Assembly: GCF_006345805.1 (NCBI RefSeq)
Contig: NW_021832878.1
Coordinates: 1 to 29,636 of the forward strand
Source: Octopus sinensis
Taxonomy: Eukaryota
Direction: 5' to 3'
DNA length: 29,636 bases
Each line of letters opens with the position of its first letter. The stretch's first letter is position 1. The position numbers were made by a program, and so were the translations under genes. A model generated the notes under the pieces. The model was not told where the DNA came from. It ran no database searches and worked only from the letters and a program-made list of their open reading frames with translations. This document shows, one piece after another, positions 1 to 27,254 of the stretch.

Positions 1-378
1 AAAGTCTCTATCATCCCCCGTCCCTGATAGAACACCATCAGTGCAGATACCCATGCATTCATTCCAATCCAACTTTAAATGTTCGAAATATGAATTTATA
101 AGATTGAAAATGTCATATCCCTTTGTTGTTTCGACGACTCTTTGAGGAAAAAAATCTTCAATAATGGATTCATCGTCCATATAACGAAATAAAACAGAAA
201 ATTGCATTCTTGTAATATCTGAGCTTTTATCTACTTGAAATGGAAAAAATTCAGATTTTTTTATTCGCCGAACCAAAAGGGTTTCGATGTCATCAAACAT
301 ATCCTTGATCAGTCTGCTCACAGAAGTATTTGAAATAGGAATTAAACCTAGCTCAGTGGCAGCAATTTCTCTAAACAT
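1..378 (-). mobile_element. hAT (Buster/Charlie, ZBED5/SCAND3-like) transposase fragment running off the window edge
   Basis: The minus-strand frame is open from 378 to 1: ...IPISNTSVSRLIKDMFDDIETLLVRRIKKSEFFPFQVDKSSDI...FRYMDDESIIEDFF...DIFNLINSYFEHLKLDWNECMGICTDG. This matches the IPLSNNTVSRRI / LDESTD / CTDGA motifs of Buster-type hAT transposases. Confidence 0.8.
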
Positions 379-617
379 TATCTTACTACTTCTTTGGGAA
401 GAATATTAGGGTATCCTTTTTCACTCCCTTAGTACCTAATTTTCATTTCGAAATAGACTATTTGGTTTTATCAATTTTTAAATTACACGACGGCTAGCAC
501 ATAAGCCAGTTTATGGGATGTAAACAATCTCAATAAAATAGAAAAATATATTCCTAAATATTTTTTTAATTAAATGTTTTTTATTAATTTATATTTAATT
601 AAAAAATTAAAAACCAT

Positions 618-2196
618 ATGAAGACTAGTGGTGGCCGATTGCGTCCACTTGTAGCTGTACTTGGCCCAACTGGTTCTGGAAAATCACAAATAGCATTTGC
701 ATTGGCCAAAAAATTTAATGGAAGCATTATAAATGCTGATGCTATGCAGATGTACAAAGGATTAAATATTATTACCAATAAACCCACTCCTTCTGAGTTA
801 AACGCGTGTCCTCATCATTTAATTGACTTTTTGGACCCTTTATATGAAAATTATAATGTCAAGATGTACAGTGATTCTGCATTACAAATTATATCCTTTA
901 TTATCATTTAATATTTTCATGCATTTTCACTTAACTATTTTACATTGAAAATCTATACAAAAATGGCAGTGGACTTCCAATCATCGAGGGAGGTACAAAT
1001 TATTATTTGGAATCGATTCTTTGGGAATCACTTTTGGAAGTTAAGTAGTAAAAATAATTTACTAAAATTTATTAGTTTTTCTCACAATTATAATTCAAAT
1101 GGTGATTTTTCTAAATTATTTTAAAGATATTGTGATGGACCAAGAGAACGAGGACAACCACAAATTGTTAATGGAAATTGATTCTGTTCATGCCTCAAAA
1201 TTTCATCCAAACGATTCTCGGAAAATAAAAAAGTTTTTTTTTAACATTTTTTAGAGCGATTGAAGTTTATAAACGAACTGGCAAGTCTATCACTGAGCTA
1301 TACTCTGCGCAAAGACAAGGGACAAAACATAGACTCAGAATTGATGATTTTTGTATCGTTTTTGTTTATCGGGATTTGAAAGGTCTGGATTTTTAAATAT
1401 TTATTTTCAGAGCTTGATAAGTTAATTGACGAAAGAGTTGATAAAATGCTGGAAAATGGTCTGGTTGATGAACTTGTCGATTTTCATCATCGTTATAGTG
1501 AAAATCGTAAAACCCAGAAAGGGTTGTTGTATATGAATAATATTTATAGACATTATGACTATCAACGGGGAATTTTCCAGTCTATAGGCTTTAAGGAGTT
1601 TCACGAATATTTGATGCTTAACGAAAATGTGTGCGAAGACTCGATAGAAGGAAAAAAATTACTTGAAAAAAGTTATTTTTTTTAAAACTATTTTCAGGCG
1701 TTGAAAGGTTGAAAAATTCAACTAAGCGCTATGCGAGACAACAACTTGGCTGGATAAGAAAACGTTTTTTAACTCGTAAAAATTAATGACTATTTGTATT
1801 ATTTCAGAGACCTATGAGGGGTGTAGTAGACCTGAACGCTATTGTGTATATAAACTAGATGCCACAGGATCCAAGGATCTGTCGACAGACGTAATTCCAA
1901 TGGCAATTACCATTGTTGCGGACTATTTGGCTGTATTGTCTCTGGTGATTATAATTCAGAAACGTGAATGCCAATTTCCCAAAGAGAAGATTAATTTTAT
2001 TACTGAAGTCGAGCAAAGATCGAGGGGCGTATCCATGCGAACTTGTAAAATCTGTGAAATGACGTTTTATGTTGATGAGAAAACCTGGAATCTACATAAC
2101 AAGACTAAACGTCACAAAGCAGCAATAAAGGCAAAAGCTAAGAATGTGAAAAATACAATAAATATATTGGAAAGTTTTATCAATAAAAATACCTGA
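618..2196 (+). CDS. TRIT1: tRNA dimethylallyltransferase (tRNA isopentenyltransferase), 10 exons
   Basis: Motifs: P-loop [76 protein letters not shown] and a C-terminal C2H2 finger CKIC...HNKTKRH. Introns: 891-943 (AT-AC), 1045 (or 1048)-1075, 1102-1126, 1233-1254, 1383-1410, 1523-1549, 1672-1697, 1776-1807 and 1933-1959. One base is missing near 1718 (att[t]ca). Confidence 0.95.
891..943 (+). other. U12-type (minor spliceosome) AT-AC intron, 53 nt, TRIT1 intron 1
   Basis: The 5' end is ATATCCTTTA, a branch-like TTCACTTAAC lies at 926-935, and the 3' end is TTTAC. Removing it joins SALQI to [21 protein letters not shown] in phase 0. Confidence 0.9.
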
Positions 2197-5403: not shown

Positions 5404-6611
5404 TTATAATTTACGGGTTAAAATTTCATCTAGAAGACGATCGACTGCTTGAGAAGGTGTAAGTAAATCTTTAGCAACTTTTTCTTGTAAACTTGTTATT
5501 CTTTCACCAAATTTATCTTGAACAGCTCCCCAAATACTGTTTTGAAGGGATTTTATAACCAAGCTTGCTTTTGTTTTTGTCGATTTTCCATAAACTCCCC
5601 ACTTTCTATCATTTTGGAGCGAAATTCGAATATTTTGCTATATAATTGATCAAATCCATCATGATTCATCGAAGATATCCTTATAACCTATACATTTTGT
5701 AAATCCCCAAAGTACAGTTGGTTTCCAATTTGGGGATTTTTGTGACAAAAATCTAAGAGCGCTTTTGTAATCTGCTTGAATACGTTTTGACTGAGTCAGC
5801 ATGTCTGAGTCACTTTTAGTCACTGCAATGATGTCGCTCAGTTCAGTAATTCCCCTCTTCATTCCTTTGATTTATTTATATTTTAAATTAGTATTATTTA
5901 TTAATTTTTAGCAACCTTGCATTTCATCTCCTGCTGTCGGAGGAATCAACAGTAAAAACAAATCCACCATATCAGCAACAGCCGTTTCTGACTGGCCAAC
6001 ACCAACAGTCTCAATAAGAATAATGTTATATTGGGCGGCTTCACAAAGGAAAAGAACTTCATTTGTCACTCTTGCAACCCCCCCAAGCATGCCACTTGTT
6101 GGAGACGGTCTTACATAGGCATTTTTGTTCAATGAAAGTCGAGGCATTCTCACTTTATCACCCAAGAGTGAACCTTATTTTATTATTTTAATAATATTGT
6201 ACCTCCTCGAGTTACAGAAGAAGGATCAACAGCAAGGACAGCCACTTTGTTTTCCTTTTTAATCAGAAAAGTACCGAACGACTCTATAAAAGTACTTTTT
6301 CCGGCCCCAGGCGGTCCTGAGATGCCTATATTTTTAGTTTTGATTAGTTTATAATATTTTAAATAAACATAGTATACCAATTCGGAACGTCTTTTGGAGA
6401 TCTGAGTTTTCTTTGGCATATTTAAGGCATTTTGATATAATATTCTGCCCAATTTCCCTTTTATAAATATTTGTCGATTCCACCAGTGTTACTGAACGGG
6501 AAAGTGCGCCTCTGTTGCCGTTTATAATCCCGTAAAACAGTTAGAAGCAATGTTAGATACAGCTTCAGTCTCCGAAAAAAAATTTCTTATGAGTAAGAAG
6601 CTTAGTGTCAT
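5404..6611 (-). CDS. MMAA: MMAA/MeaB GTPase chaperone of methylmalonyl-CoA mutase, 6 exons
   Basis: Motifs: [83 protein letters not shown] and AVTKSD. GT-AG introns of 52, 29, 52, 28 and 23 nt. One A is missing near 6541 (tct aa[a] ctg). The start codon is uncertain. Confidence 0.92.
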
Positions 6612-8690: not shown

Positions 8691-9269
8691 ATGGTTTTCA
8701 ATTCCCCTAAGCGCTAATTCCTTGAATATTTTTCTTGTTGAGCTAATTTTTTTATTATTTCCTTTTTCCGCTTTTGTGTCAATAAAACCGCATTTTAAGA
8801 TTTTGAAAATTTTGGGGATTGAAATTGATGTCGAAATCAAAATTTTACTGGAATTACCGAAGCATCCTAAAATCTATGACTAAGCAAACAAAACTAGTCG
8901 CGATCAAGATATAATTCTAATTTGCGCAAGCTAAAATCCATTAGTTTTTCCTACCCGTTGATGTTTCGAGATCTTTTTTAATTAAAAAATTATTAGATAA
9001 TCTAAGAACTTTTAAAATTTGTCAAAATAATGATATTATTAGGACTATAAAATCAAGAAGCGGTAAATGTAAAAAGTGTTTAAAGTGTTTAAAGAAGCGG
9101 TAAATAAATGTATGTTAAACAAATTAACTTTTTTTATATAAAGATGGACAACTATGTATAATTCCGTGGAATTGGAGCTTTGTGCTCTTTCAATTGCTGC
9201 CAAGAGAGCATCTCAGAAGAGGGAGTCCTATAGGGCGGAAAAGGTGCGTCTTTTTTTGCTAAGCATAGA

Positions 9270-10075
9270 ATAACATCCGAATATCGCCACAAAAAGATTC
9301 ATTCTTAACTTAATGAAACACATATTGAACCTATCCAAAACTCAACATGGCTTCCGCCCACAACATTCAACAACAACTTACTTCATGACTCTAACGGATT
9401 GCATTGCAGACAGATTTAACAACTACAATCCATTCCAAAGAACAATTCTGACATCAATAAACATCAGTAAGGCATTTGACTAAACATCGCTTCATGTCAT
9501 CAGCACCGAAATTTGTGAATCCAACATTATGAAATATGGCTGACCAGCTTTTTATCAGAAAGACACGGTCGTACAGAATACGCGAACAAAAAATCTTGAT
9601 TCCGCTACCTTTCAAATGGCGTATCACAGGACTCTTCTCCCTCCTCTTTACTCTTCAACCTCCATTTGAGGACATCCCCTACTCTTAAGTTACGCAGACG
9701 ACATTGCGACTGCATCAAAACATCGGGAAATCACAGAAGCCACAGTCAGATTCCAAACACACCTAGACTGTCTTACCAATTGGGCAAGATCTAACCACAT
9801 GATGCCTTCCCCGTCAAAATCATATGTGACCTTATTCATCCCCGACCGACAACAGTTCAACGTCAGCCCTAAAAAACTACCCGTCCTCGAACATTCCAGA
9901 ATTTTGGGGGTCATCTTTGACCACTGCCTCTTCTTTTCTCAGGAAATTGACTTCACATGCAGTAAAGTCGCCCTAAAAGCCATATCAGGCCAATTGTTCG
10001 GTCGAGCAAAAGAAAGTCTAGTAACCGTTTATAAACAATCTGTTTGAACGTCCCTGAATTGTACCAGCCATAGTG
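9270..10075 (+). mobile_element. Decayed LINE reverse transcriptase fragment
   Basis: Peptides QHGFRPQHSTTT, SINISKAFD, NGVSQDSSPSSLLFN, YADD (tac gca gac gac near 9691), LTNWARSNHM and RILGVIFD. Confidence 0.85.
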
Positions 10076-12409: not shown

Positions 12410-13355
12410 AGCAGCAGAGGATAAGATTGAATGGCAATTCCCACGCAAGATAGCTATTGATATGCGTTGGAAAAGCCATATCCGTTCCCGAGGATCATTT
12501 TTTCTTCTGCTTGCCAGCTCCCCCATAAGGAATATTGGTACTTTTGTAGTAGTCTACTGTAAAAAATAGTATTATTTTGAAACTCGCTAGAAAGTGGCTG
12601 TAGACTACTACAAAAGTACCGGAATATTTTAGTTCTGGGACCGAGGACTCTCGACGTCTCCACTGCGATCGGGGCAAAGATATGACGGTGCGATAATGCA
12701 CTGTATTTCTTGACTTTTAATGTTTCCGCAAGGTTGGCCACGGAGCCCGGCTCTGTGGCTGACGTAAAGATGTTTCCGTCGGAGAAGGTGTCCGTGCAAG
12801 TTGCGTCCCAGATGAAGGGGAAAGTCGTTAGGCCGTCAGGACGTTTACCATCCTCCCGAACCAGGCCGACCGATTCCAACTGTGATGAGAATCCGGCAGT
12901 TTCAAGAGTCCGCTTGACTATGTCGTGTCGGGGAAAGCGTCCGGAGCTTCTCTGACACGATAATGGGTGCAATCCAAAGGGGTCAACGGTTGATCCACAG
13001 CGGCACCAGTGTTCTCTGCATACGTTTAGCCCCAGGCAGAATGAGACGCCGATCCTCAGGCAATCATCGTCCAATAAGGTTCAAATCGATCTCATAGGGA
13101 TGGCGGTCAATATGGTTGCAAGACGCCCAATAAACAAGCCAAGCTATGTTTGTTAAGCTTAGGCTTGAGGTTGTTTGACTTCTGATCACAGAGAATCCTG
13201 TCCCATTCGTCCTGTGCGTGTGTATTCTGCGGAAACTTAAGAGACAACCCAAGCCAGCGACTTTCTACGGCGACTGACTCTGAGTCCATAAAAGATTCGG
13301 TAACGGGTTGGAGAATCTCTTGGACAAGGGTGCTCGTGGCATGTGTAGAAGAAAG
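12410..13355 (-). mobile_element. CRE-like non-LTR retrotransposon, 5'-truncated and interrupted by a MITE
   Basis: HWCRCGSTVDPFGLHPLSCQRSSGRFPRH (CCHC), EDGKRPDGLTTFP, WDATCTDTFS and FAPIAVETS. The 3' end is nearly identical to the copy at 22663-22866. Confidence 0.85.
12537..12620. mobile_element. 84-bp MITE with perfect 21-bp TIRs and an 8-bp TSD (Merlin-like)
   Basis: The TIR GGTACTTTTGTAGTAGTCTAC is at 12537-12557 and its reverse complement at 12600-12620. GGAATATT flanks both sides (12529-12536 and 12621-12628). The homologous CRE copy near 22790 lacks the insert. Confidence 0.9.
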
Positions 13356-16138: not shown

Positions 16139-16605
16139 ATGAAGCTCGTCAGGTTTAGATGTGATTTTAAGTTTTCCTAGTTTTTTAATGAAGTTGAGCC
16201 ACGAAACTGTCACGATTGAATTAAAAAATTCTTCCCAAGTTCATGGAACTATTACTGGTAAGCATCAATCTAATATTAAAATAGGAGTCGACATTTACAT
16301 GAATACTCATTTAAAGACGGTGAAAATGACCACTAAAAGTGGAGACACCTATCAATTGGATACTCTTTCAGTTCGTGGAAACAACATTCGTTATTTTATC
16401 TTGCCCGATAGTTTGCCGCTTGATTCTCTTTTAATCGACGACGGACCGAAGGTTAGGAAGAGAGGAGAAGGTCTTAATATGAATATTCAATTTCGTAGTT
16501 TTGGATAAAGATGACGAACGTCAGCGTAGAAAACAAGAAAATAATATCGTCAGACCCAGAGGACGGGGAAGGGCGCGCGTACGGGGTCGCGGTAGAGCCC
16601 GTTAG
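16139..16605 (+). CDS. SNRPD1: Small nuclear ribonucleoprotein Sm D1, 4 exons
   Basis: [41 protein letters not shown]...[23 protein letters not shown]...[15 protein letters not shown]. Introns are 16153-16180, 16258-16284 and 16471-16498. Confidence 0.97.
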
Positions 16606-24159: not shown

Positions 24160-24555
24160 CTCGATGATGAGGTCCCCCAAAACCTTCAAGTCAATTTTCT
24201 GCGTTTTTGTTAAAATGAACAACAAGAAAGTCCTCGACTCACATGATGTGGTCCCCCAAAACCTTCAAGCCAAAAAATTAAAAAAAATTATTTTCTGCGT
24301 TTTTGTTAAAATGAACAACAAGAAAGTCCTCGACTCACATGATGGGTCCCCCCAAAACCTTCAAGCTAAAAAATTAAAAAAATTATTTTCTGCGTTTTTG
24401 TTAAAATGAACAACAAGAAAGTCCTCGACTCACATGATGTGGTCCCCCAAAACCTTCAAGGTAAAAAATTAAAAAAATTATTTTCTGCGTTTTTGTTAAA
24501 ATGAACAACAAGAAAGTCCTCGACTCACATGATGTGGTCCCCCAAAACCTTCAAG
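24160..24555 (+). repeat. Tandem array of about 4 units of 95-96 bp
   Basis: GTCCTCGACTCACATGATG recurs at 24230, 24326, 24421 and 24516. Units are nearly identical and have no spacers. Confidence 0.97.
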
Positions 24556-25259: not shown

Positions 25260-26199
25260 GCATTCTAGGTTAATTGTTTGGGATGAATGTACGATGGCTC
25301 ATAAAGGCGCATTCAAGCAGTTGACCGAACATATAGAGATATCAAGAATTGTAGCGACCATTTGTTTGGGGGAGCATTAGTTGTATTGGCAGGTGATTTT
25401 AGACAGACGCTGCCATTATTCAAAGAGGGACGCCAGCGGATGAATTGAATGCCTGCCTCAAATCGTCATATTTGTGGACACACGTGAAAAAGGTTAGCTT
25501 AGATGTAAATGTACATGCACATTTACAAGGCGTTAATAGCATATTCCCACAAATCCTTCTAGATATTGGAAATGGGGCAATCACTTCAGAAATGCACGAC
25601 CAGAAAATTAGGCTACCGGAAGAATTATGTATTTTCGTAGAAACAGCAGAAGAATTATTGAATGCCGTCTATTCCGAACTATCTGAACACTACGTGAATT
25701 TCGACTGGCTGCGTGAACGAGCTATATTAGCTCCACTTAATGATGAGGTACTTAATATAAATTTAGATTTATTAATGAAAATCCCTGGCAGAGAAAGAAT
25801 ATATAAATCGGTCGACGTTATTATGGACCATGAAAGGGCCTGCGATAGATTTAAAGACTACAATTTCCGCTGAAGATAAGTTTTGCTATGACAATAAACA
25901 AGGCCCATGGACAGTCTTTAAAGGTAGTAGGCTTATTTTTAGAGAACGAGTGCTTTTCACATGGCCAGCTGTATGTGGGGTGCTCAAGGGTAGGTAGAAG
26001 AGAAATTTATTTATATTTGCCAAGGATGGACGGACTCTGCAAACATCGTTTATCCACAGCCTTAGAATAAGGTTATATCAAAGCAGGTCGCATTTATATA
26101 TCTACATAAATTTATAGTTATTTAAGGAAACTGCGAGCGTAGCGAGCAGGGCCTCCGCAGGAGCTAGCTCGCAGTGAGCGAAGCGAACTGCTGAGCTAG
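25260..26199 (+). mobile_element. Internally deleted Helitron: PIF1-type helicase remnant and intact 3' terminus
   Basis: Peptides LIVWDECTMAHK, FGGALVVLAGDFRQTLP, RAILAPLN and FAMTINKAHGQSL...FSHGQLYVGCSRV. The 3' end has a CTGCGAGC...GCTCGCAG inverted repeat and CTAG|T at 26196-26200. Confidence 0.9.
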
Positions 26200-26218: not shown

Positions 26219-26762
26219 ATTCTGTTTCCTTTTTTTTTTTTTTTAATTTATTTTTTTTTTTGATGAAAACCAACCAATAACTACAAGTTAATTAATTAAA
26301 AGCTTCAAGTGCGGGAAGCCGACGCGATCGAGAAAGAATTAGAGCGTACTATCGCAAGGGATATCCGCTCGAAAAAACATCTCGATTCGCGGGCGTCGCC
26401 TGTGATGGCAGACATGCGGGATCCGATCTCCTGAACGAAGCTGATTGCCTTACTGCCCAAGGAACCGGAAGTCTCAACCGCGAATGGAAGGAATTGGAAC
26501 TTCTCCGTAAGTGAGGAGTACTTCCGCATCTTTTTGCATTCCGCGGTTGTGACAATAGATCCAGGAGCGGAGGCCGACATCAGCAGGTTCTGAGGCGAGA
26601 AAGAGTCCACACACGTGGCATCCCAGGTGAGAGGCTTCCCCCTGTTGAAAGGAAACACAGTTATCCCGTCAGGCCTTTTTCCGTCTCCCCGATCGATCCC
26701 AGTGGGTTCAAGCAGGGAGGGGATTCCGGCGACTTCCAGGGCTCTCTGAATTCTGTTTCCTT
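26219..26762 (-). mobile_element. 5'-truncated CRE-like retrotransposon insertion with poly(A) tail and 13-bp TSD
   Basis: The ORF ...GDGKRPDGITVFPF...WDATCVDSF...FAVETSG... is open to its stop at 26305-26307. Poly(T) lies on the + strand at about 26230-26261, and ATTCTGTTTCCTT occurs at 26219-26231 and 26750-26762. Confidence 0.92.
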
Positions 26763-27254
26763 GCATGTAAAAATATTTAATTTTTATTTATTTTGACCAA
26801 AACAAGTTTTTAATTAAAAAATAATTGACAATTTTAATTATAATCATTCATTGTGAAATTATATTGAGCAAAAGCTTGCTTGTTCTTGAAACCATCTAAA
26901 TATTAGTTGAATTTTTCGACTAAATTTTTTGAAGATTGCTAATTCGGGAAATTGCTGGTTGATATTCATATGATTGGTTGACATATAACAGACAGACTTT
27001 TTATATTTTAGGAAATGAAGATTTTGATTCCAAATTAAAAGTTGACAGAGTTTGCCTATTCAAACCTCGAGACAACTTGGGTCATTTCCGGTGGACTCTG
27101 AATTGTGCAATACTATATTCAACTAGTTGAAGGATGTTTGATGTGATAATTAATATATTTTGTGAGATTAGTTTTGTGACATAATTGTTTAATTACTTTT
27201 TTACTGCAATTCAATTCCAGTGAATAACAAAGAATTTTCTAAGTAGAATTAGAA

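Follow-up and report, generated by a model that had tools for sequence, protein, structure and literature searches.

Human TRIT1 is on the list of minor (U12-type) intron-containing genes (PMC7507305). Larue and Roy reported the loss of minor splicing in nematodes, myxozoans, oikopleurids, and tardigrades, with dicyemids absent from the main text, and the same work describes tiny minor introns in Blastocystis, averaging ~42 bp with a median of 39 bp, of which 77% are AT-AC and 49% are in phase 0 (PMC10639083). Dicyemid introns of any kind are very short, with a median of 27 bp (PMC6543705), and Dicyema japonicum and the myxobolid myxozoans are the only animals with a reported median intron below 30 bp (PMC13644364). 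Here we describe the first intron of a TRIT1 gene located on a 29,636-nt stretch of DNA, hereafter the window, which is a whole unplaced contig (NW_021832878.1) of the Octopus sinensis assembly GCA_006345805.1 and most likely comes from a dicyemid (Dicyema sp.) co-assembled with its host. With a probability of about 0.85, positions 891-943 represent a genuine U12-class AT-AC spliceosomal intron in phase 0, orthologous to the TRIT1 minor intron, in this likely dicyemid.

The intron, ATATCCTTTATTATCATTTAATATTTTCATGCATTTTCACTTAACTATTTTAC, is 53 nt long. It opens with ATATCCTTTA and carries TTCACTTAAC at 926-935, after which eight bases (936-943) complete it; its terminal dinucleotides are AT at 891-892 and AC at 942-943. 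The first nine bases, ATATCCTTT (891-899, on the forward strand like all TRIT1 features), agree with the U12-type 5′ splice site at 9/9 consensus positions (/[AG]TATCCTT(T)). A branch-site-like element, CACTTAAC, occupies 928-935 and matches TCCTTAAC at six of eight positions, with C928 and A929 as the mismatches and the CTTAAC core intact. The intron is thus laid out as a 9-nt donor, a 28-nt spacer (900-927), an 8-nt branch element, and an 8-nt tail. Adenosine 933 or 934, 9-10 nt away from the 3′ junction, is the putative branch point; the branch element and the final AC are separated by TATTTT alone, with no pyrimidine tract. A preliminary description of this DNA had named the intron start, a motif ending 8 nt before the junction, and the AC end, all of which are found exactly in 891-943.

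The reading frames leave little freedom for the position of the cut. The frame of the ATG at 618 stops at 909-911, and the frame used further on has a stop at 932-934, so the excised piece must span 909-934 and have a length of 3n+2. Cutting out 891-943 fuses exon 1 (618-890) and exon 2 (944-1044) in frame, giving ...SDSALQI-IENL... The claim that removal of the intron restores the conserved TRIT1 frame was borne out, as the ALQI-IENL junction is in frame and gap-free against animal TRIT1; in a MAFFT alignment of 11 animal TRIT1 proteins, SALQI-IENLY matches AL.I-I(D/E) without a gap.

All in-frame, stop-free excisions around intron 1 were enumerated, and 13 alternative paths were scored against a profile hidden Markov model made from 119 animal TRIT1 proteins. 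The 891-943 path received the top score (408.9 bits). The remaining AT-AC pairs scored between 385.5 and 402.8 bits, the best GT-AG path, with 17 residues deleted, reached 374.6 bits, 34 below 891-943, and intron retention gave 120 bits. The GT-AG path offered as an example in the preliminary description, 871-969, did not hold up: it is 99 nt long, breaks the frame, yields a truncated product of 120 aa, and scores 111 bits. There is no GT within 872-911 and no AG within 935-967, so that no in-frame GT-AG or GC-AG path is shorter than 104 nt (the shortest are 866-969, 879-988, 871-992, and 858-988). These paths remove at least 17 residues of the conserved helix and strand that precede the GGT motif (PIIxGGT).

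The strongest evidence for the U12-type call is positional orthology. We examined the TRIT1 genomic loci of other animals at the same codon boundary. In the window, ALQI is followed by ATATCCTTTATT...TTTTCACTTAACTATTTTAC and then IENL (53 nt, AT-AC). In the pufferfish Takifugu bimaculatus, ALSL is followed by ATATCCTTTCAC...TTTTCCTTAAAACATTCTGAC and IDDM (1639 nt, AT-AC), with the donor ATATCCTTT and the branch region TCCTTAAAAC before the AC. In the primate Sapajus apella, ASAL is followed by ATATCCTTAGGA...TCTTTCTTAATGTTCAC and IEDI (3303 nt, AT-AC), with the donor ATATCCTTA and the branch TTCTTAAT, again before AC. The nemertean Tubulanus polymorphus, a spiralian, has ALAI, then GTATCCTTATTC...GGCCTTAACTTAAGTTTCAG, then IDKL (776 nt, GT-AG); its donor GTATCCTTA contains the GTATCCTT motif, and its branch GCCTTAAC, with CCTTAAC, is followed by AG. 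All four introns are in phase 0 and carry U12-type signals. The orthologue branch elements, TCCTTAAA, TTCTTAAT, and GCCTTAAC, lie at comparable distances from the 3′ end; in these orthologues 7-12 nt follow TTAA, and the branch-to-AC distance in the window is within that range. Because the same boundary, phase, and U12 signals recur in three animals, the window intron appears to be an inherited, ancient U12-type intron and not a chance look-alike. The preliminary description had called 891-943 a U12-type AT-AC intron and had proposed looking for one at this TRIT1 position in other animals; Takifugu, Sapajus, and Tubulanus have it, and the call is backed by the signals, the frame, and the profile score, but chiefly by this orthology. 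An intron at this boundary is missing in the beetle Diorhabda, in the sea urchin S. purpuratus, and in the coral Oculina, where the copy is intronless. As for the lineage itself, dicyemids are reported to be spiralians (PMC6736024).

The donor octamer RTATCCTT by itself is not enriched in the window, with four matches against 2.78 expected. The composite motif is another matter: ATATCCTT, CTTAAC, 5-14 nt, and AC, in that order, are expected 0.03 times per window on both strands together, as estimated from 400 first-order Markov simulations of the window. The one in the window falls exactly on the boundaries demanded by the reading frames and by homology. Of the other RTATCCTT matches, those at 299 and 5675 lie antisense to coding sequence, the former to that of the gene upstream of TRIT1, and the one at 411 is intergenic; there was no RTATCCTT in the 9.4 kb upstream of the window, read from haplotig sequence. 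As separate observations, three of the four window matches (299-306, 411-418, and 891-898, all +) lie within 600 nt on the TRIT1 strand, for which ~0.03 are expected. The GTATCCTTTTTCACTCCCTTAGTACCTAATTTTCATTTCGAAATAG at 411 sits in the 237-nt intergenic stretch before the TRIT1 ATG and could be a U12-like intron of the 5′ untranslated region, a decoy U11 site, or chance. At 5675, the + strand ATATCCTT is what the MMAA/MeaB codons for IRIS read as on the opposite strand.

By sequence, the host gene is a tRNA dimethylallyltransferase of the TRIT1/Mod5/MiaA type in its eukaryotic form. It extends over 618-2196 (+) and comprises eight exons encoding 453 aa: exon 1 starts at ATG 618 and runs from the P-loop (GPTGSGKS) region to SDSALQI, and exons 3-8 follow exon 2 at 1076-1101 (26 nt), 1127-1232, 1255-1382, 1411-1671, 1698-1775, and 1808-2196. 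Apart from intron 1, all the introns are GT-AG, namely intron 2 (1045-1075, 31 nt), intron 3 (1102-1126, 25 nt, after the 26-nt exon), intron 4 (1233-1254, 22 nt), intron 5 (1383-1410, 28 nt), intron 6 (1672-1697, 26 nt), and intron 7 (1776-1807, 32 nt). The modelled protein gives one contiguous match to Pfam IPPT (PF01715; 197.6 bits, profile positions 1-242 of 243) and has a C-terminal C2H2 zinc finger (CKICEMTF...HNKTKRH). Its closest relatives among the best 120 hits are animal TRIT1 proteins, with 37-47% identity and E-values down to 6e-80.

Two more contigs of the same assembly (L006 and L007, of 64 kb and 279 kb) are haplotigs 99.5% identical to the window. The intron 1 sequence is the same in all three copies, which rules out an assembly error there. 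No haplotig variant falls inside intron 1 and ~0.4 would be expected, a target too short to show constraint. Across the TRIT1 exons, the three copies show 17 differences, every one of them downstream of intron 1. In the modelled frame 12 are synonymous, against 4 and 1 of the same 17 in the shifted frames and a neutral expectation of 20% (P about 1e-5). Since these differences are mostly synonymous, the downstream exons appear to be translated in the frame that needs a 3n+2 excision. We consider the gene functional and under purifying selection.

The U12-dependent pathway is well established, and its steps can be applied to the window sequence. The U11/U12 di-snRNP (small nuclear ribonucleoprotein) would bind ATATCCTTT (891-899) and CACTTAAC (928-935) jointly, across the intron. 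Positions +4 to +9 (TCCTTT) would base-pair first with the U11 5′ end and afterwards with U6atac, which would take the place of U11 at the 5′ splice site. At the other end, CTTA(A)C could form five contiguous pairs with the branch-recognition sequence of U12, leaving A934 or A933 bulged as the presumed branch point. The AC at 942-943 would then be picked through its short distance from the branch, and exons 618-890 and 944-1044 would be joined to give ...ALQI-IENL... From an evolutionary perspective, an ancestral minor intron of kilobase scale has probably been reduced to 53 nt, in a genome whose introns are miniaturised. The organism very probably retains a minor spliceosome that performs this excision; the preservation, in a functional gene, of a U12 5′ splice site with 9/9 matches strongly implies such retention.

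The RefSeq annotation misses this intron. The models P0121-P0123, assigned to Octopus sinensis, are chimeric: with the GT at 871 as donor, they link NYNVKMY to exons far downstream and then continue into unrelated sequence. Such chimeras are the expected output of a predictor that admits only GT-AG introns and imposes a minimum intron length. P0122 is named ‘tRNA dimethylallyltransferase-like [Octopus sinensis]’, and one RefSeq mis-model on a haplotig contig carries the name ‘adenylate isopentenyltransferase 5, chloroplastic-like’. A similar slip was seen in Takifugu bimaculatus, where protein P0088 (L001 7792-9430) reads ...ALSLISFHLRNKLPII, the first bases of the AT-AC intron (ATA TCC TTT CAC) having been translated. 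This protein should splice as ALSL-IDDMQSRNKLPII, and we regard its present form as an annotation error caused by the non-canonical intron.

As to the source of the DNA, several features suggest a dicyemid assembled along with its host. The window holds four animal genes with mini-introns, has a GC content of ~33%, and contains many repeat-like open reading frames (ORFs). Its median GT-AG intron of 28 nt is in the range reported among animals for dicyemids and myxobolids alone (PMC13644364, PMC6543705), and dicyemids live in the renal sacs of cephalopods. An Ets-domain gene is also present, from which it follows that the contig is animal. D. japonicum was collected from Octopus sinensis, and 49% of its genome was reported to be repeats (PMC6736024). 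A myxozoan source is unlikely given the host and the lack of any myxozoan protein among the best 120 TRIT1 hits.

Several observations weigh against a U12-type intron in a dicyemid. The branch element is degenerate, with its 6/8 match to the consensus and five contiguous pairs with the consensus of the U12 small nuclear RNA (snRNA); its fit is comparable to that of the primate orthologue TTCTTAAT but short of a full match. Rfam scans found no U11, U12, U4atac, or U6atac in the ~39 kb read (the window, scanned at E up to 10, plus 9.4 kb of a haplotig; L006 and L007 were scanned at gathering scores), a result that is uninformative rather than negative; a U4 match (16.8 bits, E = 9) was dismissed as noise. 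Protein searches for transcript-derived copies, made with the full-length protein and with its N-terminal 169 aa, returned only the mis-modelled P0121-P0123. A single U12-type intron was seen, the other three RTATCCTT matches of the window lying outside introns on their strand, and the dicyemid identity is circumstantial. The degenerate branch element and the lack of a minor snRNA in the ~39 kb scanned would suit a real AT-AC intron excised by the major (U2-type) spliceosome, a relic nearing conversion in a lineage that has lost minor splicing. Such loss has occurred in fast-evolving parasitic or compact animals (nematodes, myxozoa, oikopleurids, and tardigrades; PMC10639083), and dicyemids are likewise fast-evolving. 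However, the 9/9 donor is unlike the GTa-type donors of the 12 modelled U2-type introns. Furthermore, CTTAAC at 8-10 nt from the 3′ end without a pyrimidine tract is a U12 arrangement, and in an AT-rich, fast-drifting intron these motifs would be expected to decay in the absence of selection for pairing with U11, U6atac, and U12. Known AT-AC introns of the U2 type share their termini with the window intron, but their donors and their branch or pyrimidine signals are U2-like, whereas the window intron has the U12 donor and branch arrangement. We therefore regard excision by the major spliceosome as unlikely.

It is also conceivable that the true splice lies elsewhere, on a long GT-AG path (866-969) or at another AT-AC pair (888-943 or 900-943). 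None of these paths breaks the frame or meets a stop, and the gene predictors did take the GT at 871 as a donor. However, the alternative boundaries score 6 to 51 bits below 891-943 on the TRIT1 profile, none of the alternative AT donors has a splice-site motif, and 891-943 alone matches the orthologous intron position. The GT-AG paths lose the conserved helix before PIIxGGT and are at least 104 nt long, whereas 11 of the 12 modelled GT-AG introns measure 22-32 nt, and the Gnomon models that use 871 omit five conserved exons and are clearly artefacts; a different splice seems extremely unlikely. That there is no splicing at all, the gene being a decaying copy or the 53 nt an artefact of assembly or insertion with a functionless resemblance to U12 introns, has in its favor that the contig is an unplaced contaminant scaffold. 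This is next to negligible when set against a 53-nt sequence common to three independently assembled haplotigs and placed exactly at an ancient intron position, eight exons that are all open and conserved, and a haplotig polymorphism of 12:5 synonymous to nonsynonymous in the modelled frame. Finally, the contig could belong to the octopus, as its database label says, or to another associate (myxozoan, ciliate, or apicomplexan), and the intron would then carry a different evolutionary meaning. Four genes of the window have introns of 22-51 nt, and octopus introns are far longer. The standard genetic code, with no in-frame TAA/TAG, speaks against codon-reassigning ciliates, some of which reassign TAA/TAG, and the Ets domain and the animal-type TRIT1 and SmD1 speak against protists. 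The TRIT1 protein is 37-47% identical to bilaterian proteins, with no myxozoan among the best 120 hits, and the D. japonicum material came from O. sinensis. A source other than a dicyemid is thus very unlikely, and the preferred reading is still that of a U12-type intron in a dicyemid TRIT1 gene.

The size of the intron can be compared with that of its neighbors. The 12 GT-AG introns modelled in the window range from 22 to 51 nt, with a median of 28, and the statement in the preliminary description that most major introns have shrunk to 22-33 nt is true of 11 of them. Intron 1, at 53 nt, is the longest of the 13 modelled introns, and the preliminary description suggested that its length may reflect a different minimum size for the minor machinery. 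It is not outside the U2-type range, however, since the GT-AG intron at 5865-5915 in the same window is 51 nt long, and the minor introns of Blastocystis have a median of 39 bp. It is possible, though doubtful, that dicyemids, whose introns are the most miniaturised among bilaterians, keep a working minor spliceosome with a higher length floor (~50 nt) than the major one (~20 nt). If so, U12-type introns would form a distinct, longer size class in this genome, and they would indicate in vivo how short the span between 5′ splice site and branch can be for the U11/U12 di-snRNP, here 28 nt. Separately, the haplotigs differ by single-base indels within two mini-introns, at 1240-1242 (intron 4, 22 vs 23 nt) and at 1389 (intron 5, 28 vs 29 nt), and mini-intron length is therefore polymorphic within the population.

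Intron models beyond TRIT1 came from a search for the path with the fewest introns, which worked for SmD1 and MMAA after a homology check. The same search gave the SPTLC1-like gene implausible introns of 48-53 nt that skip coding sequence, and this gene was excluded from the length statistics. A homology-free census of GT-AG, GC-AG, and AT-AC segments joining open frames returned more than 1700 candidates on the + strand and was useless. The SmD1 (SNRPD1) gene lies at 16139-16508 (+), with introns at 16153-16180 (28 nt) and 16258-16284 (27 nt); since the latter keeps the frame and has no stop, an ORF finder reads through it as KHQSNIKIG. The MMAA/MeaB GTPase gene lies at about 5430-6452 (-), with GT-AG introns of 29, 51, 28, and 23 nt and a contiguous Pfam match. 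Upstream of TRIT1 and divergent from it, a FAM200/ZBED5-type gene (hAT-derived, DUF4371) occupies 1-380 (-) and continues into L007 at 9237-9761 (-); 237 nt separate the two start codons. A tRNA gene at L007 8930-9001 (+; Rfam, 64 bits) lies ~450 nt upstream of the window start.

Among the remaining reading frames, ORFs 12454-13074 (-) and 26305-26766 (-) share DGKRPDG.T.FPF...WDATC.D.F...E..K..KY and have no Pfam match. They resemble copies of an unclassified family of repeat or transposon proteins, to which the ORFs at 9.7-11.8 kb and the PIF1-like fragment at 25445-25873 also seem to belong. ORF 24164-24409 (+) has an internal direct repeat, with FCVFVKMNNKKVLDSHD..PQNLQAKKLKK occurring twice, and therefore points to a tandem duplication of ~100 nt.

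In the literature, U12 is not mentioned in the dicyemid genome papers PMC6736024 and PMC6543705, and AT-AC is likewise unmentioned in the one of them that was searched for it. Two large surveys of minor introns pass over Dicyema in their main texts, and neither Dicyema nor TRIT1 comes up in PMC11347168 or PMC7367187. Among the full texts searched, Dicyema appeared together with the minor spliceosome only in a 2008 paper on intron evolution, which is not used as evidence here. Minor splicing in Dicyemida is therefore probably indicated here for the first time at the sequence level, and intron 1 probably ranks among the shortest candidate U12-type introns of animals. Fast-evolving, compact animal lineages have repeatedly lost the minor spliceosome, and the TRIT1 intron argues that dicyemids kept the minor pathway. 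The intron is compressed ~60-fold relative to that of the primate with its 5′ signal intact, and the lower size limit of U12-type introns could be explored on it as a natural substrate. On the practical side, the analysis reveals probable dicyemid contamination in the RefSeq annotation of Octopus sinensis, along with chimeric gene models. It also illustrates, in the window and in Takifugu bimaculatus, that predictors limited to GT-AG mis-model AT-AC introns.

Intron 1 can be compared with several systems described so far. With the U2-type mini-introns of dicyemids (median 27 bp; PMC6543705, PMC13644364) it would share the genome and the trend to miniaturisation, but those introns are GT-AG, have a weak GTa donor, lack ATATCCTT and CTTAAC, and are mostly about half of its 53 nt. 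The minor introns of Blastocystis are likewise tiny, AT-AC, phase-0, U12-type introns in a compact genome, and they show that the minor machinery can process introns of ~40-50 nt. Blastocystis, however, is a protist with hundreds of such introns, whereas the window offers one case, in an animal, orthologous to a long vertebrate intron. The Tubulanus TRIT1 intron has the same position and phase, with the donor GTATCCTT and the branch GCCTTAAC 12-14 nt from the 3′ end, but is of the GT-AG subtype and 776 nt long. The vertebrate TRIT1 minor intron shares the codon boundary (AL.[IL] / I[ED]), phase 0, the AT-AC ends, the ATATCCTT(T) donor, and a branch element that contains TTAA and lies 7-11 nt before the 3′ end. 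The two differ in the branch elements themselves (TCCTTAAA and TTCTTAAT in the vertebrates, CACTTAAC in the window) and in size, with 1639 and 3303 nt in the vertebrates and 53 nt in the window, whose genome has median introns of 27-28 nt.

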